Positions 3,130 through 64,000 are shown, counted from the first letter of the stretch. The stretch: 64,000 nt of DNA from Mytilus californianus (GCF_021869535.1 NW_026262734.1:52638001-52702000), one strand, 5' to 3'. Notes: a model not told the origin generated them from the sequence alone. Program-made: numbers and translations.

Positions 3130-3905
3130 GAGAAGCATTAAAAGTACATATTCAGAATTTAGTTATACATTTGTGTACCTACCGAGGATCGCTGTTTTCG
3201 AAATCTGGACACGAAACATGCTCAGTGTCTAAAACAGTTTTATGAAAATCAACAAATGTGTCATACAATTCTCATTGGAAACATTGTCAGCGAGGTTACT
3301 ACTGATAAAGATAAATTGTCAAAGTTTCTTCAAGAACCTGGCAAAGTAGCAGTTGAAACTTTAGGTGGTAATCATACAAGGCATGCGCTACAATGTTTAT
3401 TCGCAAGCCAAACAAAACCTATTAGCATGGTAACCTGTCGGTTATACAACCAATTACCAGACGAGTTGGCGCTACAATTAGGATATGAACACGATGCATC
3501 TAATACATTAGGAAATCCGACAAGTTTTGTTGATTTAGTAAAAGTGTTTCGAAAAGAAGCAGCAAAAATAGTAGGAGACACAGATATTAACTGCATGCAA
3601 AGTAGTGAAGTAAAGCAATGGAATTTCAAAGATATAATATGTACCATTCTAGGGATGTACAGAAAGGCGGAAGAATTTCATAACAAATACAAGGTTGTTT
3701 TGAAAATTGCAAAATCAAAGGATTCAGTATGGGGAAAATTCTTAGATTTCTGTTCCGCTTTCGAAATGAATGAAATAAGAAATACTCCAAGAGGTTCCTT
3801 AAAGGTTACACAGTTGAGAGATTTTTCAATGCTTTCTAGTGATAACCAAATACATATTTTGGAAAAGACAAAAGACTGGAGAGTATTTAAGAGAGAAGTA
3901 GAAAG
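3130..3905 (+). pseudogene. Exon encoding a ParB/Sulfiredoxin-like domain plus a helical (HTH-like) region
   Basis: The open frame extends upstream of the ORF-track Met: VPTEDRCFRNLDTKHAQCLKQFYENQQMCHTILIG...VETLGGNHTRHALQ...VTCRLYNQLPDELALQLGYEHD...PTSFVDLVKVFR. This parallels ParB PR..fd...l.eL..SI / PilV / yeii.GxHR.rA / deea..lal.EN / l.p.e.a. Donor AG|GTAAAT at 3905/3906. Confidence 0.7.
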
Positions 3906-4064
3906 GTAAATAAATACATATCATGTCGTGTGCACTGTTAAAAGTTTTCACTGCCTTACATGGTTTTCTCAAATGTTGATTTTATATTTGTAAATGAACG
4001 ATACTTCCTTATCATTAATTGTTCATTTGTTGGTTTGTAAAATATGCTTCATAAAAAAGGCATT

Positions 4065-22819: not shown

Positions 22820-24247
22820 TTGAAAAAAGTTAAAAGTCCAATTAACGGAATGTTGGAAAGGGGCATACATTATGCCAAACAAGAATCAGGTTGAACCCTA
22901 TATAGTAAGGAAACAGAAGCAACAGTAGTATACCGCTGTTAAAAAGTCATATATCGATTGAAAGGAAACACAACAACTATAAGAGGAAAACAACTGAACA
23001 ATGGAACGCTTGTTTCATTCCCCATTTATCGTAACAATAGAAAAATGCCAAAACAAACACGCAAATGTTAATATATAAGGAAATAATATACAACGTATGC
23101 ACTTATATTGTGTTTGTTTTGTGTGACTTTGTTACATATTTGTTTGTTTTATAGTGATTGAGATTATAACACAATATTGACTGCTGTGTTTCAATTTTTT
23201 TTTTAATTTTTTCCTATTATATCTGCTTATTTTGTTCACACATTATTGTCAATATAATGGAATTTAATGCGACTGTCATACAAGTGATAGGTTTAGCTAG
23301 CTATAAAAAACACTTGTTATCCATTCGATCGTTTGAAGTGTTTGAACTTTTGATTTTGCCATTTGATTAAGGATTTTCCGTTTTAAATTTTCTTCGAAGT
23401 TTGGTATTTTTGTTATTTTACTTTTTCCAGTATATTAATTTTCGCTGAAACCAAATTTTTCATGTTTTTGACAAGTTAGAATTAGACTCTAATGTCGTCT
23501 GATTTTTAACTGAAGAGATGATCGGAAATTGTAAAGAATTGTACCTTGTTTGCCTTGTTTTTGTATCCTATTGTGGACCCCCGATAATTTTAAGTAGTGT
23601 ATCTCATTAGTCATGCGGGTTGCCCGGAAGTTTTTAGTTAATAGAAGCTCAACTTTAATATCTTCACCGGGTTGATAAGGTCTGTGTAAAATAAATAAAC
23701 AAACGCGATATTTTTAAATGAGATCGTCCCAGGTATATAAGGTTATTATTTTGCGTTGCATAACACATATACATATATGATTATATATTTTCAGTATCTT
23801 ATCTTTCGAACTACGAAGACAATCTTTGTTATGCACATTGTGATGATTTCTTTTCACTACATGTGTAACACACATAACTCGTCATGGAAATCATAACTTA
23901 GATATAAACGTCACGATAGGTAAATTTCAATGATCAGACAATTATTACAAGTATCCTATAGGTAAGATCACGAGAACATGTAAATCCAGAGTTGTATAAA
24001 ATTAACAGATGGTTTAATTGGTCTGTAAAATGTATCGTATAACCATACATTGAGCAGTTTTGTTGTGCCAGAATATTGTCAAACAATTAAATGACCTAAT
24101 AGCAAGTTTTCAATTGCATATTTATTGAATGTTTTGAATAAGGTTACCATTTAGGGAAACTTTTTAAAAAGTCCTATGAGTACACATTTTATTTACATTT
24201 CTCAAATATTTTGTATTTCTATTTTATTTCCTTAGTTTTCATTCCAG

Positions 24248-25017
24248 ACCAAATACAGAAAATGACAGATAATTGGAAATTTGAAGACAGTACATTTGTG
24301 GACACAAGAGCATGCACTCATTTAATCAATTGCATAAAAGAAAAGAGCTGCATAAGGATAACAGGCACTCGAAGGATTGGAAAAACCTTCCTTGCTAGAC
24401 ACATTGCGCTAAATTTACAAACACAAGGTTACAGAATTATTCCTGTTATAAAACCAACAGACATAACGTATCATTATCAACCTGGGACACCCACTGTTTT
24501 TCTAATAGATGATTTATGTGGAAAATATACTGCTAGTTATCCGCAGATTGAGGATTGGCTTCAAATGGTACCAGTTATCAACGCGATCATGAAAAATAAT
24601 CGTTATAAAACAATTACAACATGTGGACAACAAGTATATGAAGATGATCGATTTCAATTATTAGAGCCTTTTGTAATATGCGAATGCAATTTGGATTCAC
24701 CAAATATGACTCTTACAACTTTAGAAAAAAACAACATCGATGAAAAGACCATAGCTGAAGATGAATCGGACAGGAAATTATCATTATATGATAAATTACA
24801 GCGTTTAAAAGACGAAGGAGCAATTGTATTATTTTTTGTTTTTCTGTTAGTTGTGATTTTTGTGATTTTCATTATTCTTCACCTTGTTTCGTTTGTTTTT
24901 TCTCTATTGTTTGTTTTAATTTTTTATAAAGAATGGTTTGTTTTTTGTTTCTGCTTTGGGATTTCGTTTTACTTTGGATGGATACTGATTTATCATATAA
25001 TTGTGAAATTTGGTTGA
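24248..25017 (+). CDS. Orphan exon: truncated nSTAND3-type P-loop NTPase with a hydrophobic C-terminal tail (possible pseudogene or membrane-anchored variant)
   Basis: TTCCAG|AC-CAA acceptor at the same position and phase as the 55898 exon. Aligns end to end with it (DQI..W..D..FV.TRA; HIAL; GY.IIP; FLIDD.CG; TC..QVY.DD.F..LEPF...ECNL). Walker A is GTRRIGKT, sensor TCG instead of TCR. Homology stops near 24730, followed by an acidic linker and about 60 hydrophobic residues. Confidence 0.8.
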
Positions 25018-26199: not shown

Positions 26200-27221
26200 G
26201 TTTCTTGTTTCTTTATTACTATGAGGCTGACTTAAGACAGGAACTTCTTAGGAAGAGAGATAAGAAGTTAGCAATATCCTTTAACTTTACGTTCCGCTAT
26301 ATAGATAATGTTCTCTCACTAAATAATACAAAATTTGGTGACTATGTTGAACGAATCTATCCCATCGAACTAAAGATGAAGAATTCTACAGATACAGTTA
26401 AATCTGCCTCATATCTTGACTTACATCTAGAAATTGACAATGAGGGTCGGTTGAAAACAAAACTTTACGAAAAAAGAGATGATTTCAGTATCCCAACTGT
26501 GAACTTTCCATTTCTATGTAGCAACATTCCAGCAGCGCCTTCATACGGAGTATATATCTCCCAATGATACAATATTCCCGGGCTTGTATTTCCTATCATG
26601 ATTTCCTTGATAGAGGTGTGCTCCTCACAAGGAAGCTATTAAACCAAGAGTTCCAAATGGTGAAGTTGAAATCATCCCTTCGAAAATTTTCCTTCGTTTT
26701 CCTATCGAAGGTCGGTGGTTTTCTCCGGGCACTCCGGCTTCCTCCACCAATAAAAACGGGCCGCCACGAAATAGCCCAAATGCGGTGCTTAAAAGTGGCG
26801 TTAAAACACCAAAAATCAAAATTAAATCCCTTCGTAAATTTTACGGACGCCATCACGAGTTGGTTGACCGTTATGAAATAACCGTTTCACAGATGATATC
26901 GGATATGTTCCTTATGTCGTAACTACAATACCCTTCCCTTTTCACGAATATGACCTACCAAATTAGACTATTTACCGGATTTGTAATAACATAAGCAACA
27001 CGACGGGTGCCACATGTTGAGCAGGATCTGCTTACCCTTCCGGAGCACCTGAGATCACCCCCAGTTTTTGGTAGGGTTCGTGTTGCTTAGCCTTTAGTTT
27101 TCTGTTGTGTCATCTGTACTATCATGTGTCTGCTTGTCTTTTTATTTTTGGCCATGGCGTTGTAAGTTCGTTTTCGATCTATGAGTTTGACTGTCCCTCT
27201 GGTATCTTTCGTCCCTCTTTT
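26200..27221 (+). mobile_element. 5'-truncated Penelope-like retroelement (RT C-terminal half, inactivated)
   Basis: ORFs 26205-26567 and 26564 onward give FRYIDNVLSLNN (YIDD changed to YIDN), SASYLDLHLEID, KLYEKRDDF, NFPFLCSNIP and YGVYISQ. There is a frameshift at about 26565, then ...LKSSLRKF/YGRHHELVDRY and the typical 3' tail. Confidence 0.85.
26691..26825 (+). mobile_element. 5'-truncated SINE (V-domain-like) inserted in the RT with a 17-bp TSD
   Basis: Insert GGTCGGTGGTTTTCTCCGGGCACTCCGGCTTCCTCCACCAATAAAA...AAAGTGGCGTTAAAACACC. It is flanked by ATCCCTTCGAAAATTTT (26674-26690) and ATCCCTTCGTAAATTTT (26826-26842). Removing the insert restores the RT frame. Confidence 0.85.
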
Positions 27222-49739: not shown

Positions 49740-50394
49740 ATGGGAGCAAGGAATTCGACATTATCCCCAGGCTCTAGTGCGAACATAAGTAACTTTGTTA
49801 GATTATTCATAGTCTCTCAGACTGAGCTTCCAAACATACTTCGGGAATTGCTTTTGTTACAAGAGCCACCCGCGTCTCTTGATGGCGATATTCGTAATAA
49901 CACGTACCTGTCTTATACACTGAGAGCCTTTGAATTAAGTGTCATAGCAACTGTCCGAACAAAACAATATGCTGATTTTGATGTTGCTCTTATGTACAAG
50001 ATAATAAGAAATTTAAATTTAGTTCCACCGCAAACACAAGGCTGGGATAACCGAATTCCACCAAATTTGACAGAAACTACAATTGGAGATGATGTAGAAC
50101 GTATCAGGCGTAGCCGGAATGATATTGTTCATAATGTGAATACAAATATCTCAGACTTAGAACTAGAGAATAGGTTCTCATTTTTTATAGACATTGCAAG
50201 TAGACTTGAAGTATACCTGAATAAACGGAACAGAGAATATGTGTCAAGAATAGAAAACGTTAAAACTTGCTGCATAGATCCGGAAACAGAACAAATGTAC
50301 CTTCGACAATTGGGAATTCTGATTGAAAGAGAAGCAATAATGCAATTAAATATATCCGCGGTCAGTCATAGAGTTGATGAGCTGCGTCAACAAA
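49740..50394 (+). CDS. Exon 1: N-terminal MGxxxS motif and DZIP3-like HEPN domain
   Basis: GACATGG start context after a TGTAG acceptor-like site. Starts MGARNSTL. RNDIVH is the Rx4H HEPN catalytic signature. Confidence 0.85.
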
Positions 50395-53300
50395 GTAAGT
50401 AAGTCAAGAAACAGACAAGTAGCCAAATAAATAGTTTAGTGCTATGTTTAAATCTTATTCATTTTTTGGTGTGTGTTTGACAAACAAAATGGCACACATG
50501 TCATCTTTATTTTGACGAAAATTGATAATGAAGTATATCAATTAGAACCAAATACCACTCTAGAAGTCTTTGAGATTGTTTGACCGCACAACGAACCTTT
50601 ATAACTGTGCACTCATTTTCAAAGTAGTTCCGTCAGGCAATAACATTTTTGATAAGATTTGATAGGTTCCATCAACAGCAAATTTCATGTATGCACTTAA
50701 GCACTTGAAAATAAATTGAATTTATCAATGACAAGATCCTTGCTAGACAAAAGGTTTTAAGATTTAAAACGGTGAATAATAAATGATATAATTAAATTGC
50801 TAGCACTTTGTTTAATACTGTATTTCACTAATAAAAAAAAGATTGTTTTTCTTTTGATGTTGTCCATTGACTCTTTCATACAAAACAATAACACTACACG
50901 TGTGCGTCACAGATAAAGTTCATTATAATGATACATGTATATAGTAGATATGTCTATATGTAAGAACTAAATCAGACAACGTGTGTCAAATATTTGACAT
51001 TAGAACTTTAGATAGATTATTGAAGTAACCATTTAAATAATTATACATATAGTTATTGTGACAACTATCTGTTGATCGTATAATGACACATATTACGTAC
51101 AATGGAATGAATATAATAAATGTAATTGTTTTTGCAATAGAACTATAATATGTTTAGAATTTTTATTTTTTAAGTTCTATATCATAAATGATCTTGTACC
51201 GATTCCCGCTGATGCATGATTACAATTGAAATTTGAAATGAATCAATTTTTTTTTAACTCTATATGACAATAATTTATCGAAAAAGAGAGGTAAAAGATG
51301 CAAAAGGGATATTCAAATCAATAAGTCGATAACGAACTGACAATGCAAGACAAAAGAAAAAAAAAACAAAAAAACGACCAAAGACAAGAAACAACGTACA
51401 AAATACAACATTGAAAACAAAAAACTTCATGATCTCATTTAATCCAGAAGAAAGTAGATCCTGCTCCATCTCAAGCATCCGCCGTGCTGCTCATGTAAGT
51501 CCAAACCTCGTGATAAGTCTAATTCGGTAGTTCACCTTCGCGAAAAATATAAATCTGGTTAACCTACTGTTTTCAATAAATGTTCTAAGAATCATTTTAG
51601 CGCAAAAAGACTCAAAATATGAAGACAGCCAATTAATCTGATTTAGGAAATTTATTCAGATAACATTAGGTATGATAAATTACAGATGAACTGGATATAT
51701 CTGGTTTGAATACAAAAGTTGCTACTTTGCAAACTGAACAAGAAGAAACCATTCCTAAGAATATAAGAGGTAAGTGTACAGTATTTTTTCCACTATAATT
51801 CAACTCAATTCAAAGATAAATATATATTTTTATATCCAAACAATATCCAACTTACACGTACTTAGCGTGTGAGATGCTAGAAGTACTTTTTGTTCGTACT
51901 TTTTTAGTTTCGAATATAATTCTTTTTTCTGAATTGAGGTGGCCACTGAAAAATTTGCAGACACACCAATGTAGAATGTATGTTCTAATTCGATAGAAAA
52001 CATGAATAAAAAAAGAATTTGCTGATTCTTATGGGTAAACATATGTCATATACATTCTCGTCTGAAACTACAAATTATCATGTTTCATTCGAATCAACAA
52101 CGCAATGCCTGTAAATTAGGTTCTTTCTTCAGATTGGTAAATGTTAAGTATTTCATTTTCTGAAAATGAAAATCCAAACTTGTTCATGCCGTTTGAGAGT
52201 ACTGATTTGTAAACCTTTATTTAAAAAATATTATTTCACACTTATTTAGTTTGATAAATGGCGGTAACAATCCTCTACTGGATGTCTCATAATTTTTTTT
52301 GTCTAAGACTACATCGATTTTAATCTAGTATAAAGTGGAATGTATTTCATAAAATACCCAACGTCCGTAGAGACTACATGATAAGACAAGGGTATGTGGT
52401 TGGACTGACAATAAAACAATTGTTTAACATCGGCTAAATATAACAGATTTATGAAATCATGGGTTACCGTAGGCGTCCAGCAATGTGCAAAACACAAACA
52501 GTCTTGACAAAGTGTGAAATAATTCAAACGACAAAACTAAAGATCTGATTGATAATTTGACACGTTAAAGATGACAGACAACAACACAAGACAAATGTGT
52601 GATGTAACATCACATTATACGATCGAACTGTAAAAATCCGTTTAAAAGGACTTGACTCATTATTTAGGCACGAAGCTAAGACAAAAAGTACCAATCTAAG
52701 AGTACTCAAAGTTTCTGAAAGCTACTATAAAGCCAAAAACAACTAATTAAGAAATTACATTCTCCCAGAATAAAGTATCAATAAGTACACACGCACTGCA
52801 TTTACTGTAAAGACATAATGTATAAAAGTCTTACAAAGCACGTCCTTGTTAAGACCAAAATAAGTCTGCATTCCGACAGGGTGTAGGACAGAATATTTTC
52901 ATATCAGTAAAGCAATACATAATTAGTAAGGTTTAATTGATCAATTACAAAATCTATGTAAGTAATCCTTTTAAACAGTATTTAAAGATCTAACTATGGT
53001 GTTTATTGATATCCTGTTAGAAAAAAATACATTTAAAAGATAAATAAGTTTAAATTGGTCGTTTCAAAATTGACGAGCTTTTAGACAACTTTTCTGGAAA
53101 ATTACGACGTGAAATTCCGTTTTGAATAAGGTACAGTTATACTTCAAAATCAAATGTGTGTGTTTGTGCGAGAACTAAGTACAATATTTCAGTAATTTAT
53201 AGTACCGACATCACTATTTGGTATTTATCAATTATACATAGGTTACGTTCATTGATAATTTAAAACGTCACTACAGACTCAAGTATAATGACCTAGAAGG

Positions 53301-56300
53301 GAGATATACACATCGTAAAAAGGACCAAAGGAACATCATCGTTCAAGAAAGGGAAACGATAAATAGCTATAAACAGTTTTCTTGATTATTAAGAGCAAAC
53401 ATGTAATAATGCTAATGTGTTGATTAGATGGAATTTAGACGGGTATTTACTGATTTTGGCCATAATCTGTGATTCATAATACAGTAATACAGGATCAAGA
53501 CTGCTATTATAGAAACGTTATTGGTGCGAGCAGAAATACATACCACCTGTCATCTAATCGGAAGTCTGTAAATGTTTTAAAAACCGCACAAAATTATACT
53601 ATCTGGCCTAATATGTACTATAAAGCGGTACGTATCTTCCGTTTGAGCCGCTTTGTCCATTTGTCTGCTGGTGCACCAGTTTACATACCCGTTACTTCTG
53701 TAATAGCATGCACATATGTTCATTGATTTATTGAAGGAATGTATCTCCCTCTCATATAGCATCATTATTTATCCAGTTTTAGGTTATATCAACTCTTCAT
53801 AGTTTCTATAAGGTTTCGGATTTTCAGATATTTTGGCATAAACCATCACTTAAGAGACGCTCATTGTTACAAAGCGCATCATTGTTTTTTTTTTTATTAT
53901 TATATTTTTTTACAATAAACATGTTATCTTTTATCTCAACATTATACCAATAACCATTCAAATGCCACCAAAAGGAGGGCAAAGACTCTCATTGGTAGTT
54001 AATGGCGTTAACAAAAAAGTCAACAAACATCACCATCGTGACTAAAAATACATTACGGGAAAATGCTTAAGTTGTCTTGTAAAGTAAGAACAATGAAGGA
54101 TAGAGAAAATCGGCCGGTGCACAATTGTTTGGAATGTCAAGATCTCTCTTCATCCTGCTTGCACTAAAATTATCAGAGGACTCATAAAACACTTTAAATG
54201 ACGTTCTTTTACTATCTTTGATCTTTTTGCCTAGTAACATAAAAAAATAGTTGTCTTATATCTCGTTAACTGTTAACTATGGTAGATAGATAGAAACTTT
54301 TAACAGCAAAACAGATCAACAAAACATTATGTACAAACTTGTTAAATTAATAAAACCATTGGATGACTCACTAAAAGTCATTGTCGACAAAAAAATAATA
54401 AGATTTTTAAAAAATGTTCATGCTCTTGAAAATTATGTCGAACAATTTGATAGCAAATTATAAACTGTAAACAGTAACTTATATGTCATGTTATTACAAT
54501 CAGCTAGCGCTGAATAATGAGTATCTTCTACAATTATTAAAGACTGGTAGATACAGTATATGTAATAGTTTCATGCTTTCGTTTCTTACTTGTAGGACAT
54601 TTCCCACTTCCAGCTTGGTATTTTCATTTCCGTCTTGACATTTCGCACTTTCATCCTACTCGTTCACTCCAAGTTGACAATGTTCACTTGCAAAATGACT
54701 ATTCACTTCATACTTGACATATTTCACTTCTAGCTAGAAATTTCTCAATTCCAAGTTGACATTTCTCTGTTAATAACACTCATCATAATAAAACTTGAAC
54801 GTGTGAAAAATGTTAACTTTTAAAAATTACAAGTTGGAAGTTTAAAATGTCGAGATGAAACTAAAAACTACAAAATTGATACTCAAAAAGGTTCAGTAAT
54901 TTTAACGACAGAACTCCCTGCCCGGTTTTTCTTACACAAAAGCTTTATTGTAACAACAGTTAGCTATTTACATGTGTGCTCTGCGTTTCTATTTGTTTAT
55001 TATTATGATGTGAGCAAAAAACATTGAATAATAACAAAATTTACATGTTTCATTACATGTCTAAGTACCTATTCTTTTCCGTACTCCTTTCAAATACAAT
55101 ATTACATTACTGAATGTTCATATTATTAGTCCCCTATTGACAAAGTCGATGGGGACTTTAGGTTGGGACTCCGTCAGTCCGTCTGTCTGTCTGTCCATTC
55201 GTCAGTCCAGTAAATCAGTTTTCCACACTTTCTTTCTTCGTGCTTGATGATACTGATTTGATATTTGATGTATTGTTTCACCATGACAAGTTACAGATCA
55301 AGTTCGAATTATATTCCGGTCTGACGATTTTGTGCAGAGTTATAATCCTTGAATTAAGAAAATTCACTAAAATATTCAGTTTTCCTTACTTTTTTCGTCA
55401 TTCTTATAGAGGTTGATTTGCTGATTAGTAAATAGTTTTATCATGACATGTTACAGATCAAGTTTGAATTTTGGTCGGGTTTAATGATTTTGTGCAGAGT
55501 TATGGTCTTTGGACTTGGAAAATTCACTGAAATAATCAGTTTTCCTCCAATATTTCCGTCATGCTTGAAGATATTGACTTGATATTTGTTATATAGTTTA
55601 CATGTACACTATGACAAGTTATAGATCAAGTTAGCATTTTGTTCCCATACAATGAATTGTTAACCGGTACCGGACTATGTTAGCCAGGCAATATTCACAA
55701 AATGCTTGTTTGTTAAGGAATACAGCAACTGGGAACATCAACGGCTTTTTTCGGGGTTTCTTGTTTCTGAGTCTCTGAGTCTCTGTAGTGTTTTGGGAAC
55801 TTTTTGTCATCTATTTATGCCCTGGCGTTGTCAACTTCTCTCGACTAATTGGTTTTGATTGTCCCCTTGTATTGTTTGCCTCTGTTTTACATTATAGATC
55901 AAATTAACAAAGACACAGAAGAGTGGAAAATTAAAGACAACAAATTTGTACCTACAAGAGCAAGCGCTTATGTTTCCAGTCACCTGAATAAACAGAGCTG
56001 CGTGACACTGACAGGCAGTCCAGGGGAAGGAAAAACGTTTGTTGCTCGACATATCGCCCTTCAATTCGAGTCAGAAGGATATATGATTATTCCAATCCAA
56101 ACACCAATAGATATAAGGGACTATTATACCCCTGGGAAACGAACTCTGTTTCTTATAGATGATATATGTGGTAACTTCATTGCAAACCAAACAACGCTTG
56201 AGAATTGGCAACAATTGTTGCCAAAAATTGAACAAATACTGGCAGACAAGTGTATCAAAATTATTGCAACCTGTAGATTGCAAGTCTATAGGGATGATAA

Positions 56301-57315
56301 ATTCAATTCATTAGAGCCTTTTAATATATTTGAATGCAATTTAAGCTCAGAAGAAATGTGTCTTACTCAATCAGAGAAAACAAAATTGAAAGAAAATTAC
56401 TTTGGTAACAAAAACTTCAATGACACTGCACAATCACGTGATTTTCTTCCTCTGGCATGTTCTTTGCAATGGCTTTCTGAAAAAGAAGGATCAGATGTTA
56501 ACAACTTGTTTGGAAGTCCGATCGATTTCTATAAAAAAGAATTAGACAATCTTAATAGATATGGTGATGAAGGTAGGCACAAAATGTGTAGTCTTGTTTT
56601 ATACGTCCTTTTTAATAATTATCTCGAGGAAACATGGGCCGAAGGTAGAATCACAGATGAACAGCGTCATGTTTTAGACGATGTATATTTGGCTTGCAGA
56701 CTGAATACAGGTACACCAAAGACTCAACTCATGGATGCATTAGATACACTAGAAGGTTCACTAGTTTGTAAAAGAAACGCAGCATACAGTGCCATACATG
56801 ACCAAATTTTTGATTTCATGGCTCATTACTTCGGTGGAAGAATGATGCGCTGTTTGATTGATCATTCTGATTCTTATTTCATAAATGAACGTTTTCAGTG
56901 GAAAACAATGAAGAATTTACATACAACTGACATTGCTTTCGCTATAGAGCTAACTGATGAAACTTTGCAGTTGTATTTTGACATATTAGTGAAAGACTGG
57001 TCAAAGGGCAAGGTAACAGTCGTAATTAACAACTCAAGCACACCATCTATACTTGTTCCTCATTCCTATCCATGTTACATTTTTCACTTCAAAAAAATCA
57101 TGGAAGAGGATCAACATACCTGTATTTATACATCAGACCGTACTGCACTGGTTACCGAAATTTTGGATAACCAAACCAGGAACTTTATATCTGAGAAACA
57201 GGCTATGAGTGCTCTCAATTTTAGAATTCATTCATACATTTTTGTATTATTCAAAATTATCAGTAAATTGTGTTCTCTACAAGGTTCACCATTACTTCAC
57301 CTTTCATCCATCTGA
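49740..57315 (+). CDS. HEPN (DZIP3-type) + linker + nSTAND3 NTPase protein, 3 coding exons, 718 aa
   Basis: Exons 49740-50394 (A|GTAAGT), 51686-51769 (ACAG|...G|GTAAGT) and 55898-57315 (ATAG|). All junctions are phase 1 and the total is 2157 nt, 719 codons with no internal stop. HEPN: FDVALMYKIIRNL..PP..GW...TIGDDVERIRRSRNDIVH. Linker: EETIPKNIR|DQI..W. STAND: GSPGEGKT, LFLIDD, TCR, LPLAC, HDQIFDF. Confidence 0.85.
55125..55715 (+). mobile_element. HINE/pearl-like MITE with about 3 tandem cores of about 160 bp, in intron 2
   Basis: TTATTAGTCCCC...GGGGACT subTIR, (GTCT/GTCC)n microsatellite, repeated ATGACAAGTTACAGATCAAGTT...GATTTTGTGCAGAGTTAT cores and a 3' ...AATGCTTGTT end. Confidence 0.75.
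55898..57315 (+). CDS. Exon 3: nSTAND3 NTPase + helical/winged-helix region, no ankyrin repeats
   Basis: Intact Walker A GSPGEGKT, Walker B LFLIDD and sensor TCR. Family-like sequence continues to DWSKGKV (about 57015), followed by about 95 unrecognised codons. Confidence 0.85.
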
Positions 57316-57329
57316 TACCTTATAATTAA

Positions 57330-57850
57330 GGTGGTATGGGAGTCTAAAATAAAAATGATAGAATTTGTTCATACTTTGTCAAAACGTAGTATATATTAAT
57401 ATATGTTCAAAAATATAATAAAAATGATAGGTCACCACGCATTTTCTCAAGCTACAGGTTGTGACAAAATGACACATTTTGTATGGATAATACAGAAAAA
57501 AAACATCATTATGTGATTAGAAGCTAAACTAAATGTTAGAATTGTAAAATAAAATACGAAACGATAGCTTTTAGAAAATGCTTTGAGAATATAAAAAAAA
57601 AAGATAGGGTCACCGTATGATTTTTCCGGCTAAAATACAAAATAGTATATTCCATGTAGTCCTTCAGAAAATGCAGTTTTCAGAGTTACCTCCCCTTAAA
57701 ATGCGAATTTCAAAACATTAAAAATCAACTAAAAATAATCTTTACTTGTATAAAAAATTGATATTTATAAGTTATGTGAAAATTCACTATATTTATCTGA
57801 ATTCCTTCATCAAGTTTTGCTAACTTGATTGAAAATCTGGACCTTAGGTC
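57330..57850 (+). mobile_element. Kolobok-type MITE, one recognisable end, immediately after the STAND stop codon
   Basis: TTAA|GGTGGTATGGGAG start, the same terminal type as 40575. The far end was not identified, so the end coordinate is approximate. Confidence 0.5.
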
Positions 57851-60800
57851 CTCTGTTTTTACCATCCAAGATGCTACATAGTTTAACCTTTATGCGTAGG
57901 AACTATTTTGTTTTTAATACATGTACTACTTTTCAGTATGTTCTTTTCTGACCAGGCCCAATTAGGTGGTGTTACAGTACATCTTAAAAAGTCTATTCAA
58001 TTATTTTTGCAAAGAATTCCGATCAAGCCGGTGCTAGGGGTCGTCTTAACTTTGCAGTGAGATGAGAGGTATGTTTTGCTTCTTGTTGAAGGCCTAACTG
58101 TGACTTTGAGATGAAAACAGCAATAAAAGCGCTATTCCTTTGCTGTGTGTGTGTGTGTATGCGGTTTGTTGTGTTTTGTTTGTTAAGGATTAACTGATTA
58201 TGTGTCATGGATAGATACTCCATATCATTTGTTTTTCTATTTTTATAAACATGGATTTCTGAGTATTTACAACCGATTCACACTTCACCTAGAGTAATTT
58301 GTTTAAATTTTTTTATAATAACTAATAACTATATTTCTGTTCTTATTCTTTATTCTATTAATTAAATATATACATTTACATTACATATCTACAGTTCTCA
58401 ATGTTTGGCTTCACGTGCTTATCTTTATCTATCAAGTCATGTCTATTCAATAGCTATGTAGGCGTGTCATAATCGTAATTAGTGACCAGCCCATACAGCG
58501 GTACACACTGTTTTGATTTCATTAACAAGTTTCAAAAAGATAAATATAACAGTTGTCAAATTAGCCATGTGATCTTTGCAAATCACTGTCAGTTGAGTCT
58601 TCAAACGTTTGACATTTTGTGAAAGTGGGAGAACTGTAAGCAGCTTAAACAAGCAAAATTTGATTAAACACATATCGAATTTTACTGTTGTTGATGGATT
58701 ACAACATTTTTTTCGTTTTGAGTTTTGACTGTATCAGTATGGTATACAAGATTTGAGGTTTCAGGTGCAGCGACTCAAATAAATTGTAACGTGTTCTAAC
58801 TTTTGCAGTATATCATTAGAGTTGTGGTTTGTGTGTGTTTTTCAAATGTGATACCGTTGTGTTAAAGATGAGCGCATTTCTTGTACTGACTTTTCATACT
58901 ATGTTTTCTATTGTGTACGTTTTGATATCCTATTGATCAAAAAAGAAGGAGGGGGTTTTAAAAGAGACATATGCATGTCTGTGTGTTTCAAAAACGAATC
59001 TGATAATCCAATCTACCAATCAACATGGCTGACATGGCCAAAAGTATAACATAGCGGTAAAATGCAAGTTTTGCCTACTATCTTGAAAACCTCTTGAATA
59101 AAAGAAAATGTTTCTAGGGCAGAACTGATCAATATTTTAATATCTACGTAGTACCCATCATATCAAAACAGTAACATGTATATGACTTCTTATATGAATG
59201 ATTTTCCTTAAATGGCAATTTATTTTCCGAGTTCTGTTTATTCTTGCCTATTATCTTGGAACTATAAAAGATAGAGAGAAACTTTGTCAACAAAAATGTC
59301 CAGCAAGACAATATTTACAAAAGCGGACAGAATTTAGAAGGAGTCATACATTTTTATATGATTATACTTTTGTATCCGCAACTGCTCCTTAACCGTGATT
59401 TTTTAACATTAACGTTTAAATCTTGCCAAATAATGTATACGGTATTTTTCTACTGGTTATGACGTTAACGATACAAATACTAAATTTCGCGTTGGCGATT
59501 CATTTTAGAATATCAGTTCATAATATACATGTATTCCTAATAAAATATAAAAATATTTCGTTATACATGACGTGTTATGTGTTCGAATAAGATCTTATTA
59601 ATGTTCGTGTGCATTCAAATATCTATACAAGCAAAGTGCATTTTAATCTAAAAGGATGTAATATAGTTTTATTTGATAACATATAACAATATTATTTCTT
59701 AAGAAATATAAAAAAAAGATCATCGTATAACAAAATTGTTTGATGGCATTAACAGACATCCGTGTACTTTTAAAAAGACAACCTGACTGCTTTAAGAATA
59801 TTTAAACAAAGTTCATGGGGTCTATACATTAAAATGCTTGATTTAATTTTAAATGTAATGCATGTTTATGTTGAATGCAACTTAAGTTTCTTTTATTTTT
59901 TTAAAAGAGGAAACGAGGCAAAAGGGCATTTAGAATCCATAAGTCGGACTCCATCATGTCCATGTTAAAAATGGGACGAAAATACAAACAAAAGTCCACA
60001 AAAACTCCTCAATGAAACATAGAGTTCATTTCTCCATGACGATTTAAAAATCATCTGATTTTGACAAATCATGGTATAGTTTTTCCTATTATAACGGTAA
60101 CGTTTAAATAATTGAGACCTCTGACAAATAAAGATAACTTGACAAACCACAACATAAAATTGAATCAACGTGACGCTAACGATAGTAGAAAATCACCATT
60201 TGGCGACTGACGGTAAAAAAAAAAAAGGCATTTTGACCATCTTGAAAATTTTAGGATCACTTAAGACAACAAGGGCTTGTATATGTTTTTGAAGAAAAAA
60301 ATCCAGACAAAAACAAACAAAAATAATATCAACCGTAAAAACTACGAAAGAGCCACTGGTCTGACAAGTATTTCAAACTGTTCCGAGGTGTATTTCAATC
60401 TGATCCGAGCTGTCTATAAAAGAAGACAGAGTTGTCTTTTATTTCGCCCACGTTGTTTAAGTCCGATTTGCCTTTGAACCGAGTTGTCCTGATTCCACCT
60501 CAAGCTGTCAAGACTCCATTTTGTGTACCGATATTTCTTTCAAATCCCTTTGTTTAACTATAGAAAAACATCACAGGAGTTAGTCTTTCATGTCTTTTTT
60601 TTTGAACCGACGGTTTATTTTTACACGTTGAAACGACCCAAGATTAAAATGTAACCTGAAAGTGTAATTGTAATCCTAATCGTAGGTGTGTTACAGTTTC
60701 CAAAAATGTCTAATATTAATTTGTTTACCTGTAGTTTAAAAAATTACTCAATCGAGCAGACACCTGTAAGATAAACATTGCAGTTACCAGTGTACACTAT

Positions 60801-60883
60801 ACAAATAGAAATAATACAACGTGGCACAGGTAAATATGCGTCATATAACAAGTCTACAGTATCACTCACAGTGTGGGAACGGA

Positions 60884-62403
60884 ACTGTACCGTTTTTTTT
60901 AATATTTTGGTCATTCGGGTGACTGTCAAGCGGGGCTCCGACATTCGAAAAAACAACAAGTTGCTGAATGTAAGTTTTGATTATCGCACGCGCTACAATA
61001 TTAAGTTTCTGCTTCAAGATTTGGTAACGAAAACATTCTACATATATATATATATATTTAAGTTCAAGCGCTCGGGATATAACAACTCCAGCGCTCGACT
61101 TTATATCTACAGCGCTACAATTTTTTATTCACAGTGCAGGACTTTGGATCTCAAGCGCTTGACTTTTTAATCAAGAGCGCTGGATTTTACGTCTCCAGCG
61201 CTGGCATTTAAAAAAAAAACACCCTCAGCAGAAAACAATCCAAAAATTATAAGGATCGAAAAAAAAAAACAATGCGAAATTATCTATTTTTTAGTTAACA
61301 AGGGGTGTTGCTGTTTTCTTCATTACGACGGCTTGTCTGTTCCTTATTTATTGATAAATTTGGGAACAAGTCTATGTATCTTTTTATATGAAAGTGAAAC
61401 TCCAAATTGATAAGTGCTTTTACATGCTTTGTAATATCGGATTTAACATAACATCGTGCATAAAAAAGAATAACAATGTTATAGCAAGTCGAGCAATCTG
61501 CGCTATAAATTGTACAGTTGAAAACGAAGTTTTAACGAATAAGTTCATTTTCGGTTTTCCCAATAAGAAACAAAGTACAACATTTATCTTGTATTTGTAT
61601 TTGCCAGCTTGTTTGTTAATGATAATATATATCTTACGTGTGTGTAAGTGCACACTTCTGTGAATATAAATGATAAGGACGTCTCGATTACTAGTTCTAG
61701 TAAGTGGAAAGCAATTTTAGGGAACACGACAGCCGATGATATGTATATAAAATAAATTATGTAGTGTAGACAGTTGTATAGATTTATAAATACGGTAGTG
61801 AAAAATAATCTGAGTTGGTTTTAAAGATATTTGATTTGTTAATCTCTTTTTTATATATTCTAAAATCGGGTTTTTTACATGCATACCCTAGCCAAAATCA
61901 TGACTCTGCTCCCATGCGACATTACAGAACTGATCCAAGTGATATAACAGTCGAAAGTTGTTTACCGACAAGTGACCGTACAGTTAAAAATATTTTGTGA
62001 CATATGTTTTTAAAGATTTAAAACTATTAGTGAGTGTAAACATATTGAATTCTAATTTGAGGAAAAAGTATATATTTATTCTTATTAAACAGCTTACAAA
62101 AAATCTTTTAAAGTCAAAATTTCAGCTGAATGAACACAATCATTTGCATAATTTTAGTCGTAGCTCTTAGTTCTATTTCCAATTTTTTCCATGTTTTCTT
62201 GCCGTAAGAATGTTTTCTGCACCCCTGTATGTTTGAATATTAATGACAGATACAAAAGTTTTCTCCTATTCATTACAAATAAGCCCCAGAGAAAAGTAAT
62301 GATATAAAACATTTAACTTCTCCGTAGCTGAAAATTATTTCGAATGTCGGAGCCCCGCTTGACAGTCTCCCGAATGACCAAAATATAAAAAAAAACGTAC
62401 AGT
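60884..62403. mobile_element. About 1.5-kb non-coding element with inverted repeats of about 66 bp
   Basis: ACTGTACCG-T-run-ATATTTTGGTCATTCGGGTGACTGTCAAGCGGGGCTCCGACATTCGAAA (60884-60951) is inverted at 62338-62403. The paralogous site near 46215-46228 lacks the segment. Confidence 0.85.
61067..61202. repeat. Phased array of AGCGCT palindromic hexamers with variable spacers
   Basis: Cores at 61067, 61090, 61111, 61133 (degenerate AGTGCA), 61154, 61176 and 61197. Spacing is 23, 21, 22, 21, 22 and 21. Confidence 0.9.
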
Positions 62404-64000
62404 GAAAATAACTTTGACAAAACATAACATAGAACAGGTGAAAGCCTGATAGAAATCTACGTAACCTAGTGAGTTTTAAATTTTTACAAATAGTTTTATT
62501 CGATTAAAGTGTACCATCAAAATTTTTCCAGAACAGAATTCAAAGTACTTGTCCTTGCCATTTTGTAAGACCATGATTTCCTTACAATGGAACTTAATTC
62601 GCCTTCAATTTTGAAGTAGTATTTCATCGATTAATTTTGTCATCAAGTATGAATTTAAGATGTTATTAAAACCTTTCGAAAGATTTAAACTGTATTTTAT
62701 TTCCTGGTTGTTCGACCTTCATTCGGCGAGTTGTAAATTCTGTAACTATGAATTTTAATTTCCTGTTCAAATGCTACATTAAAAAGTAGTACCAATCATA
62801 CTATTAAGAATGTTTTGAATATAAATGTTTATTATGTAGACCAACGACTGTATGGACTGTGGCAATAATACTTGTCATGAACAAATGAGAGTACACACAA
62901 AGTGAAATGTGCATGTGCAGTTTCACATAATAAGTGTAATACCACCATTGATTTTCCCCTAATAGTCTTTGTTAAATTTGCACTTTCCAAAAAAAATCCA
63001 AGGATTTATCTTCTTTTCAAAAAAAGAAATACTTTGCTTGAGTAATAATATCCTCATGAATTGTCATGCTTCTTGTGTAATACTTAATGTGAAAAGTGGG
63101 CTCGGAAAAGAACAATGTCGTTTAAATTCTAAAATTGAAAATTTATAAATAAGGAATTGCCTACTTTCAGTAAAGACATCATCGTATAAATTGAGCGAAA
63201 TTACCCCATTACATGTTCATTGGTCTCTTTTTTTGTGATGATCATAAGCAGTTGTCTTCTGTGTTGTTTTCTTAATTTTTTTTATTCATGTTTGGGGAAA
63301 TAGTAATAAATATTTTCAAAACCTTACTGAATGGAGCTGATTTTGACCACATATTAACATGATTAAGATGTTGTTTATTTTTCTGTCGATGAAGACCATC
63401 ATAAAACATTTTTAATTTGGAGACAGTCAATTAAAATGTAACTTATTTCACATTGGTTAGCTCAATAAATAAGCTGGTCTAAATTAACCAAATGTTCAGT
63501 TACTAGTAAGTTCGGTTTAAACAAGTTTCACTGTTTCATAAAAGTTTTTAATCCGTCAACTTAAAATCATTTCTACGTTTTGAAAGATTTTTTTATAACC
63601 CACGTAAACAAACACATTCCCAAAATTTATTTTTAAAAGGTGGGAAAAGAGCTAGAGCTTATTCATGTTATGCTAATATGTTGCTTGTTTATTTTTGAGT
63701 AGTTTGTCCATATGCTGCATGTTGTCTTGCTTTGGTACCACTATTTTCTAAACCTTTACAGACATTCAATGAGCTAATGAATCCATAACATCGACTCATA
63801 AGCTCAACCATTTTAAAGTCGGGAGATCACTTCAGTGTATACTCAACATGGTTAATTTGTAGTAGAGTGATTTTTAACACATGTTAAGTACTTACCTAAT
63901 CTAAACAATATCACAAGAAATTAATATCAAATCTGAATATCCTGGCAATATACGATTTGTTTTTCTTCAGAAAATTCTACTATTTTCCCTGTTTATTTAT

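Follow-up and report, generated by a model that had tools for sequence, protein, structure and literature searches.

The DNA considered here (the window) is a stretch of 64,000 nucleotides from Mytilus californianus (GCF_021869535.1 NW_026262734.1:52638001-52702000), free of N runs throughout. On its + strand, at 49740-57315, lies a three-exon coding sequence that coincides exactly with the annotated gene LOC127710594; the gene model is identical to P0001, a protein on public record as ‘uncharacterized protein LOC127710594 [Mytilus californianus]’. It comprises 2157 nt, or 718 codons and a stop. Exon 1 (49740-50394, +) begins with ATG and specifies an N-terminal MGxxNS motif, a HEPN_DZIP3 domain and the beginning of a long linker helix; its phase-1 donor, GTAAGT, stands at 50395. 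Intron 1 (50395-51685, +; GT...AG) is followed by exon 2 (51686-51769, +), 28 codons of linker joining HEPN and NTPase, which the paralogous loci L002 and L004 likewise keep as a small exon of its own. Intron 2 (51770-55897, +) leads to exon 3 (55898-57315, +, stop included), which contains a STAND NTPase module, its helical and winged-helix part, and a non-homologous tail; an AATAAA hexamer follows at 57348, past the stop. Both introns are of GT-AG type and phase 1, with GTAAGT as donor in each case and acceptors ...ACAG and ...ATAG. Within intron 2, at about 55181-55711, there is a repeated unit that is multi-copy in a paralogue's intron. Scans of the window for Rfam families, tRNAs and tandem repeats gave nothing relevant. 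Searches were run exon by exon and with the public record P0001.

The HEPN core (Pfam HEPN_DZIP3, PF18738) occupies 49965-50300 (+), protein residues 76-187, and exon 1 matches the profile with E 6.9e-13 and 49 bits (cut-off 27); HEPN_RiboL-PSP and HEPN_Cthe2314 give weaker, sub-threshold matches on the same helix. Within the core is the Rx4H motif RNDIVH (50115-50132, +), which holds the predicted catalytic Arg and His of a HEPN RNase: R126, N127 and H131 are invariant across 19 relatives, and the motif conforms to the Rx4-6H description given in PMC9646362, in which the Arg is followed by a polar residue, usually Asn. The AlphaFold model of exon 1 is all-alpha, with a pLDDT of 84.9. Foldseek comparison of this model with the PDB produced no significant match to a solved structure (best E 0.34), phmmer against the PDB found nothing relevant for the domain, and no PADLOC profile matched the HEPN exon. 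As the fold search returned no solved HEPN structure, the assignment draws on sequence profiles and the motif. That the domain would act as an RNase on dimerization is a prediction by analogy for LOC127710594; RNase activity of DZIP3-type HEPN domains is likewise treated solely as a prediction in PMC9646362 and PMC3710099.

Exon 3 matches Pfam nSTAND3 (PF20720) at E 1.5e-28 and 99.9 bits (cut-off 27.2), over profile positions 1-152 of 155, and the P-loop domain so defined lies at 55945-56400 (+). Walker A reads GSPGEGKT (56014-56037, +) and Walker B LFLIDD (56146-56163, +); a sensor-1-like motif, ...ATCR, has its Arg in place; and none of the 13 invariant NTPase columns is altered. The Glu at the x-position of Walker A, a variable position of the P-loop, is found here and in none of the other 30 sequences of the 31 compared. 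Secondary structure and pLDDT place the helical and winged-helix-like part of the module at 56437-57036 (+), ending with the last family-homologous residue. The HMM scan proposed with the original prediction matched both HEPN_DZIP3 and nSTAND3, far beyond chance in each case.

Fold comparison agrees: 96 PDB entries match the STAND fold at E <= 0.001, the best being EfAvs5, followed by NLRP2/3, Dark, Avs4, SAMD9 and NLRC4. The TM-scores are low (0.2-0.4), as is to be expected because the query model is multi-domain and has a disordered tail. The NTPase also matches PDC-S73, a candidate phage-defence protein in PADLOC, at 3.2e-17. Among Pfam matches at E <= 0.1 no NACHT family appears, and the likeness to NACHT-type NLRs is at the level of fold only. 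Sequence searches of the PDB gave no meaningful match for either domain, and NCBIfam gave weak generic P-loop matches only.

What follows the NTPase module sets this gene apart from its relatives. In these the exon that encodes the module continues into an array of ankyrin repeats about 300 aa long; in L003, L004 and L005, NTPase and ankyrin repeats lie in one continuous exon. Here, homology to relatives ends at about 57,036, and comparison of the DNA with four loci (L002, L003, L004 and L005) puts the boundary at 57033-57040. Identity of exon 3 to 30 relatives is about 50% through residue 380 and no more than 10% from residue 381. The remaining 92 codons and the stop (57037-57315, +) stand where relatives have a linker and the ankyrin array. 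This tail matches no Pfam family and is modelled with pLDDT below 50; its residues 24-77 find a match, interrupted by a frame change, in non-coding DNA that lies about 3.8 kb beyond the stop codon of the L003 paralogue. An open run of this length is uncommon, in that about 1% of random starts in the window reach it. When the C-terminal halves of five paralogues were used as tblastn queries against the entire window, no ankyrin coding sequence came up at E up to 10, and neither the protein nor the rest of the window contains a C-terminal repeat array of another kind. LOC127710594 therefore lacks both the ankyrin array and its linker, and the frame runs for 92 codons into unrelated DNA.

Several ways of accounting for this boundary may be considered. 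Splicing that would link a point near 57.0 kb with an ankyrin exon further downstream is rejected, since NTPase and ankyrin repeats form one exon in L003, L004 and L005, and since the 5′ flank of the next unit already starts at 60.76 kb. Insertion of a transposon has no support: the DNA past the boundary occurs only once in the window, and it is single-copy in the five loci too. A flaw of assembly, in which the animal really has an ordinary NTPase-ankyrin exon and the position near 57.04 kb is a mis-join or a haplotype collapse, would be in keeping with the high heterozygosity and extensive presence/absence variation of Mytilus genomes (PMC9710001, PMC10514466), and with a region built as a tandem array of similar units. 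Against it, the window is free of N runs, no second copy of the sequence following the boundary occurs in it, and the downstream DNA is roughly collinear first with the 3′ flank of a paralogue and then with the 5′ flank of the next unit. Owing to this collinearity the boundary looks like a real deletion and not a random join, and artefact is an improbable explanation.

The same missing segment bears on the view from which this work began, that the locus holds a frame-intact gene, with all its motifs preserved, for an NLR-like receptor with RNA cleavage as its output. In its favour, the three-exon model, the splice sites, and the HEPN and NTPase motifs are as described, and the STAND fold is confirmed. 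The word ‘intact’ does not survive, because essentially all full-length relatives have a repeat module that is absent here, and the C-terminal 92 residues have no homology to anything. Without its C-terminal repeat array LOC127710594 lacks the receptor part and so is not a complete NLR-like receptor; that it should nevertheless function as one is very unlikely indeed. For the family as a whole the picture of an NLR-like receptor with a predicted RNA-cleaving output finds support in the STAND fold, the PDC-S73 match and the exchange of HEPN for CARD on a common chassis.

Relatives on that chassis are many. At least 158 in Mytilus are built on nSTAND3 and ankyrin repeats, and their N-terminal domain is HEPN or CARD. 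Domain counts were taken over 120 of the 158, as listed: HEPN_DZIP3 is found in 46 and CARD in 26, P0001 alone is without an ankyrin Pfam match, and all 120 of these matches are Mytilus or Logan contigs. Of 19 HEPN relatives compared, nearly all have ankyrin repeats, and full-length forms measure about 910-1020 aa; two M. coruscus records, P0014 and P0036, are short and contain HEPN and nSTAND3 only. As HEPN and CARD alternate on the same nSTAND3-ankyrin chassis, HEPN occupies the effector or adaptor position of an NLR-like protein.

On the chromosome, family members form a loose tandem array, with paralogues at 52.49, 52.715 and 52.78 Mb of the same record. The end of the window, 60758-64000 (+), is homologous to the 5′ flanks of paralogues and marks the start of the next array unit; the gene of that unit, LOC127712790 (P0005), is found about 13 kb beyond the window end. 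Upstream, at 24211-25017 (+), is an isolated nSTAND3 P-loop fragment (Pfam nSTAND3 E 4e-22; 45-51% identity to the family) with no HEPN, helical or ankyrin parts adjoining; it is probably the remnant of another array member. The neighbours are damaged too, in ways other than LOC127710594: the HEPN exon of the L003 paralogue is interrupted by one stop, and was for that reason left out of the protein alignments and used for counts only, and in another neighbour the ankyrin region carries one frameshift.

Taken together, these observations make LOC127710594 best understood as a C-terminally truncated copy of an NLR-like family member, a casualty of array turnover that either is decaying into a pseudogene or is non-autonomous; we put the probability of this reading at about 60%. 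The loss was most likely fairly recent and a product of birth-and-death turnover in the array, leaving a gene that can still be translated. Lacking the repeats, it would not act as an autonomous ligand-gated receptor.

The principal competitor is a protein that does without a sensor: expressed and kept by selection as a HEPN-NTPase protein working without repeats of its own. Such a protein could be a helper, amplifier or regulator that co-assembles with the ankyrin-bearing paralogues of the array, or its activity could be controlled by level of expression only. The homologous part extends for 626 codons without stop or frameshift and keeps every family-invariant residue; for this reason the truncated form could be under maintaining selection. 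At positions conserved in at least 90% of relatives it deviates at 0 of 65 in HEPN and 4 of 86 in the NTPase. The unusual length of the open tail, the existence of the two short M. coruscus records (P0014 and P0036) and the NCBI annotation of the locus as protein-coding fit as well. dN/dS against paralogues is 0.37-0.52 (about 0.4), not 1, but such pairwise values average in the time that preceded truncation. The tail, on the other hand, has no relatives, is modelled with low confidence and derives from non-coding flank; the M. coruscus records may be fragments of annotation; neighbouring copies are decaying; and no transcript contig of exactly this sequence was found, P0001 being carried by the genome record only. 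Replacement and silent changes number 20:7 in the lineage of the window and 16:17 in the closest relative, a difference that is not significant (Fisher p = 0.064) and amounts to a hint of relaxed constraint. All considered, maintenance as a sensor-less protein is a minority possibility and rather unlikely. The more specific proposal, that the ankyrin-less protein joins the oligomers of its paralogues by way of the shared NTPase and contributes additional RNase domains, as a maintained helper or amplifier, is unlikely; if true, it would bring the logic of paired or helper NLRs, with an RNA-cleaving output, into an animal.

For the full-length family a mode of action can be sketched by analogy with other HEPN and STAND families. 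The build would be an effector or adaptor (HEPN or CARD), a short linker, nSTAND3 with its helical and winged-helix part, and finally the ankyrin array. The array may keep the protein off, bind the trigger, or both; nucleotide-dependent STAND oligomerization would then pair the N-terminal HEPN domains; the Rx4H motifs of such a pair could together make up a composite, metal-independent RNase site; and cleavage of cellular or viral RNA might follow, giving an output resembling abortive infection or that of RNase L. Oligomerization and RNase output are both predicted for the family. An effector-STAND scheme with RNase output suits it because the NTPase fold is closest to bacterial Avs5, and then to the NLRPs and Dark. 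This scheme is not new: it was proposed in 2013 and again in 2022, and genes of this type have already been described. No functional test of an animal protein combining DZIP3-type HEPN with a STAND NTPase was found in the literature consulted.

The family is a good candidate for a cell-autonomous immune system of invertebrates with a predicted enzymatic (RNase) output, and it exemplifies an effector-STAND logic common to bacteria and animals. LOC127710594 itself, being a copy without a sensor, is of smaller importance. Its interest is as a natural truncation illustrating birth-and-death turnover in the array, and as a warning that an open frame and intact motifs do not make an intact receptor; full-length paralogues, for example P0022 and P0023, whose genes lie at the syntenic loci of M. 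trossulus and M. edulis, are the better subjects for study.

Among known systems, RNase L offers a parallel of principle. It consists of ankyrin repeats, a pseudokinase and a KEN/HEPN RNase; the ankyrin repeats sense the ligand, and the RNase, of the HEPN superfamily, is activated by induced self-association. No sequence relationship between RNase L and the Mytilus family was found; the order of domains is reversed, a pseudokinase stands in place of the STAND NTPase, and the HEPN domain belongs to a different family, the KEN domain being nonetheless classed as HEPN (PMC3710099). NLRP3, NLRC4 and Apaf-1/Dark also bear comparison. They share with the family the STAND fold, the CARD found on some paralogues, and the order effector, NTPase, repeats; they belong to a different STAND clade, and the output predicted for the Mytilus proteins is an RNase and not recruitment through death folds.

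The structurally closest NTPase is bacterial. Avs5 (AVAST type 5; SIR2-nSTAND3-TPR/Sel1, PDB 9jap) has an NTPase of the same Pfam family, nSTAND3, is the best fold match (E 3.9e-6), and shares with the family a tripartite layout of effector, STAND and repeats. Its effector is SIR2, whereas here it is HEPN; identity is about 14%, TM-scores are 0.17-0.29, and the animal gene has introns. Antiviral function has been shown for Avs5; the links of the Mytilus family to antiviral STAND systems are nSTAND3 membership, the fold and the match to the PADLOC candidate, and an antiviral role for it is a prediction. The bacterial HEPN-STAND proteins, with PDC-S73, resemble the gene described here in placing HEPN at the N-terminus ahead of a STAND NTPase, and the NTPase match to PDC-S73 has been given above. 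The HEPN exon, unlike the NTPase, has no PADLOC match and belongs to the animal DZIP3 family; the fusion may for that reason reflect convergent shuffling of domains and not shared descent.

The likeness of animal HEPN fusions to these bacterial proteins, with their N-terminal HEPN and STAND NTPase, was pointed out in PMC3710099, which also records animal fusions of DZIP3-type HEPN with NACHT, ankyrin, CARD and Death domains, and a lineage-specific expansion in oyster. The nearest described counterparts are the HEPN_DZIP3-NACHT genes of the pearl oyster, which carry Rx4H and were proposed to be intracellular sensors and RNases (PMC9646362). They differ in that their NTPase is NACHT where here it is nSTAND3, and in that their repeats are LRR, TPR or WD40 where those of the Mytilus family are ankyrin (LOC127710594 having none). 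In other respects the two sets of genes correspond: an N-terminal DZIP3-type HEPN domain with Rx4H and an Asn following the Arg, then a STAND NTPase, then C-terminal repeats, with lineage-specific expansion in regions that are clustered and variable in structure.

In a public protein search, the exon-3 reading frame matched P0001 at 100% identity; this 718-aa protein is annotated as 'uncharacterized protein LOC127710594 [Mytilus californianus]' and carries precomputed Pfam assignments to HEPN_DZIP3 and nSTAND3. Searches were done either with single exons or with this public record. Its coding locus is at 52,687,740-52,695,315 of record JAKFGE010000008.1 (assembly GCA_021869535.1), a 115.5-Mb chromosome scaffold on which the window spans about 52.638-52.702 Mb; the M. 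californianus genome is the subject of PMC9710001. Alignment of P0001 to the window by tblastn gave three blocks, which reading of the junctions resolved into exon 1 (49740-50394), exon 2 (51686-51769) and exon 3 (55898-57315), all on the plus strand. The two introns, each in phase 1, have GTAAGT as donor; their acceptors are ACAG and ATAG. The sum is 2157 nt, or 718 codons and a stop; therefore, the coordinates and three-exon model of the original prediction are exactly those of the annotated coding sequence.

What sets this gene apart is the absence of ankyrin repeats. HEPN-bearing relatives in M. trossulus, M. edulis, M. galloprovincialis, M. coruscus and M. californianus are 910-1020 aa long and carry HEPN_DZIP3, nSTAND3 and ankyrin repeats. 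A wider search found at least 158 relatives; among the 120 listed, by our own count, HEPN_DZIP3 is present in 46 and CARD in 26, and ankyrin Pfam domains occur in every one except P0001. In three paralogous loci (L003, L004 and L005), a single uninterrupted exon encodes both NTPase and ankyrin array. Protein similarity between the window gene and all relatives drops from ~50% to at most 10% at exon-3 residue 381, and DNA similarity to four independent loci stops at 57033-57040. No ankyrin-like coding sequence was detected anywhere in the 64-kb window, even at E = 10; compared with the L003 paralogue, ~5 kb is absent, including the whole ankyrin region. The 92-codon tail that remains matches no Pfam family, and part of it matches non-coding DNA ~3.8 kb past the stop of the L003 paralogue, with a change of frame within the match.

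We read LOC127710594 as a recently truncated, non-autonomous copy, with a probability of about 0.6. The gene had been described as intact, and as an NLR-like receptor. The open three-exon frame and the motifs bear out the first description in part, but the ankyrin region found in the relatives is gone; as this is the receptor part, the second description fails for this gene, and an intact receptor is very improbable. The window contains no run of N, and we consider it improbable that the gap is an artefact of assembly. The closest DNA-level relative of exon 3 is L005, a 3396-bp contig from Logan run SRR29152237, which is 90% identical up to window position 57040 and then continues into a full ankyrin array; intron-like sequence upstream marks this contig as genomic.

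A rival reading, that the copy is maintained as a sensor-less partner, is in our view unlikely, if less so than an assembly artefact. The length of the open tail is uncommon, as only ~1% of starts chosen at random in the window run for 92 codons, but this is no more than a weak hint. Of the positions conserved in at least 90% of relatives, the window protein departs from the consensus at 0 of 65 in the HEPN domain and 4 of 86 in the NTPase, counts within the normal range of the family. Pairwise dN/dS is 0.37-0.52 where the window is involved, and 0.28-0.34 for NTPase pairs without it. When differences from L005 (90% nucleotide identity) were polarised with three outgroups, the window lineage showed 20 replacement and 7 silent changes, and the L005 lineage 16 and 17 (Fisher p = 0.064); this suggests, but does not establish, relaxed constraint on the window lineage. 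Separately, exons 1 and 3 differ in their histories: silent divergence from L003 is 0.29 in the HEPN exon and 0.62 in the NTPase exon, which points to gene conversion between members of the array or to an exchange of exons.

The retained modules are readily recognized. Exon 1 matches HEPN_DZIP3 in Pfam (E 6.9e-13; 49 bits against a cut-off of 27), and two further HEPN families match the same helix more weakly. The Rx4H motif is there as RNDIVH (50115-50132), its R, N and H invariant in the 19 relatives compared. The structure predicted for this exon (pLDDT 84.9) consists of an all-alpha domain and, after it, a long helix; Foldseek against the PDB gave no significant match for it (best E 0.34), and the HEPN assignment therefore rests on the profiles and the motif. 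The protein begins MGARNS (residues 1-6; 49740-49757), which agrees with the general N-myristoylation pattern (Gly2, Ser6). An MGxxNS start is common to the closest subclade (P0003, P0022, P0023 and P0024), and distant HEPN paralogues start MATAS...; this start may indicate membrane targeting.

LOC127710594 is part of a loose array on a single chromosome, with P0003 (LOC127710593) ~180 kb upstream and P0007 (LOC127710592) ~84 kb downstream. For P0005 (LOC127712790), the 5' flank begins within the window, at 60758, and the exon for NTPase and ankyrin repeats lies ~13 kb beyond the end of the window. Window 60758-64000, where that next unit starts, shares homology with the 5' flanks of paralogues (L002 5748-9445; L003 4714-6817). 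None of the three HEPN-bearing units readable end to end is complete: in the P0003 locus (L002, ~28.4-29.6 kb), a single frameshift breaks the ankyrin region, and remnants of the repeats follow downstream in another frame; in the P0007 locus, a single in-frame stop interrupts the HEPN exon (L003 9401-10060), which accounts for the missing HEPN in its annotation; and the window copy has no ankyrin region. Damage that differs from unit to unit is the pattern left by birth-and-death turnover, which is typical of arrays of immune receptors.

An isolated ORF at 24211-25017 (plus strand; Pfam E 4e-22) encodes only the P-loop domain of nSTAND3, 45-51% identical to family members, and then passes into low-complexity hydrophobic sequence; neither a HEPN part nor a helical or ankyrin one was found near it, and it is probably a remnant of another array member. 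An exon-2-like piece lies at L004 1704-1787. Intron 2 holds about two copies of a repeated unit (55181-55711) with similar short ORFs (55240-55416 and 55448-55582); the corresponding paralogue intron has at least six overlapping copies (L002 23224-24405), and TRF at default settings did not report the unit. Two long plus-strand ORFs, 3256-3909 (217 aa) and 26205-26567 (120 aa), match no Pfam family at E ≤0.01 and may be exons of unannotated genes or mobile-element remnants.

An RNase output for HEPN-STAND proteins is not a new idea. Fusions of DZIP3-type HEPN with ankyrin, CARD, NACHT, Death and LRR domains, and their expansion in oyster, have been described, and eukaryotic HEPN-NACHT proteins likened to bacterial HEPN-STAND proteins (PMC3710099); pearl oyster has more than 50 HEPN_DZIP3-NACHT genes with Rx4H, for which RNA degradation was proposed (PMC9646362); and combinations of HEPN, STAND and ankyrin are discussed among bivalve immune expansions (PMC8195603). 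In the Mytilus family, the repeats would sense or restrain; the STAND module would then oligomerise; and the N-terminal HEPN domains would meet to form a predicted composite RNase site. This mechanism, put forward in the original prediction, is the natural one for the family and has indirect support, as HEPN and CARD are interchangeable on one chassis and the NTPase is related to the antiviral STAND proteins of bacteria.

That kinship is seen in exon 3, which matches nSTAND3 (E 1.5e-28) and the PADLOC candidate defence protein PDC-S73 (3.2e-17). The NTPase motifs anticipated from the sequence were all found (Walker A GSPGEGKT, Walker B LFLIDD and a sensor-1-type ...ATCR), and 13 of 13 columns invariant among relatives are kept. 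One residue of Walker A, at a position that varies in the family, is unusual: the P-loop has Glu there (56026-56028), as does no other of the 31 aligned sequences, 21 of which have Val. The model of exon 3 comprises a P-loop domain, predicted well, and a helical/winged-helix part; from residue 379 onwards its pLDDT stays below 50. The PDB structures that it matches are those of STAND proteins: the SIR2-STAND protein EfAvs5 comes first (E 3.9e-6), followed by NLRP2/3, Dark, Avs4, SAMD9 and NLRC4, and the NTPase of Avs5 is likewise classed as nSTAND3.
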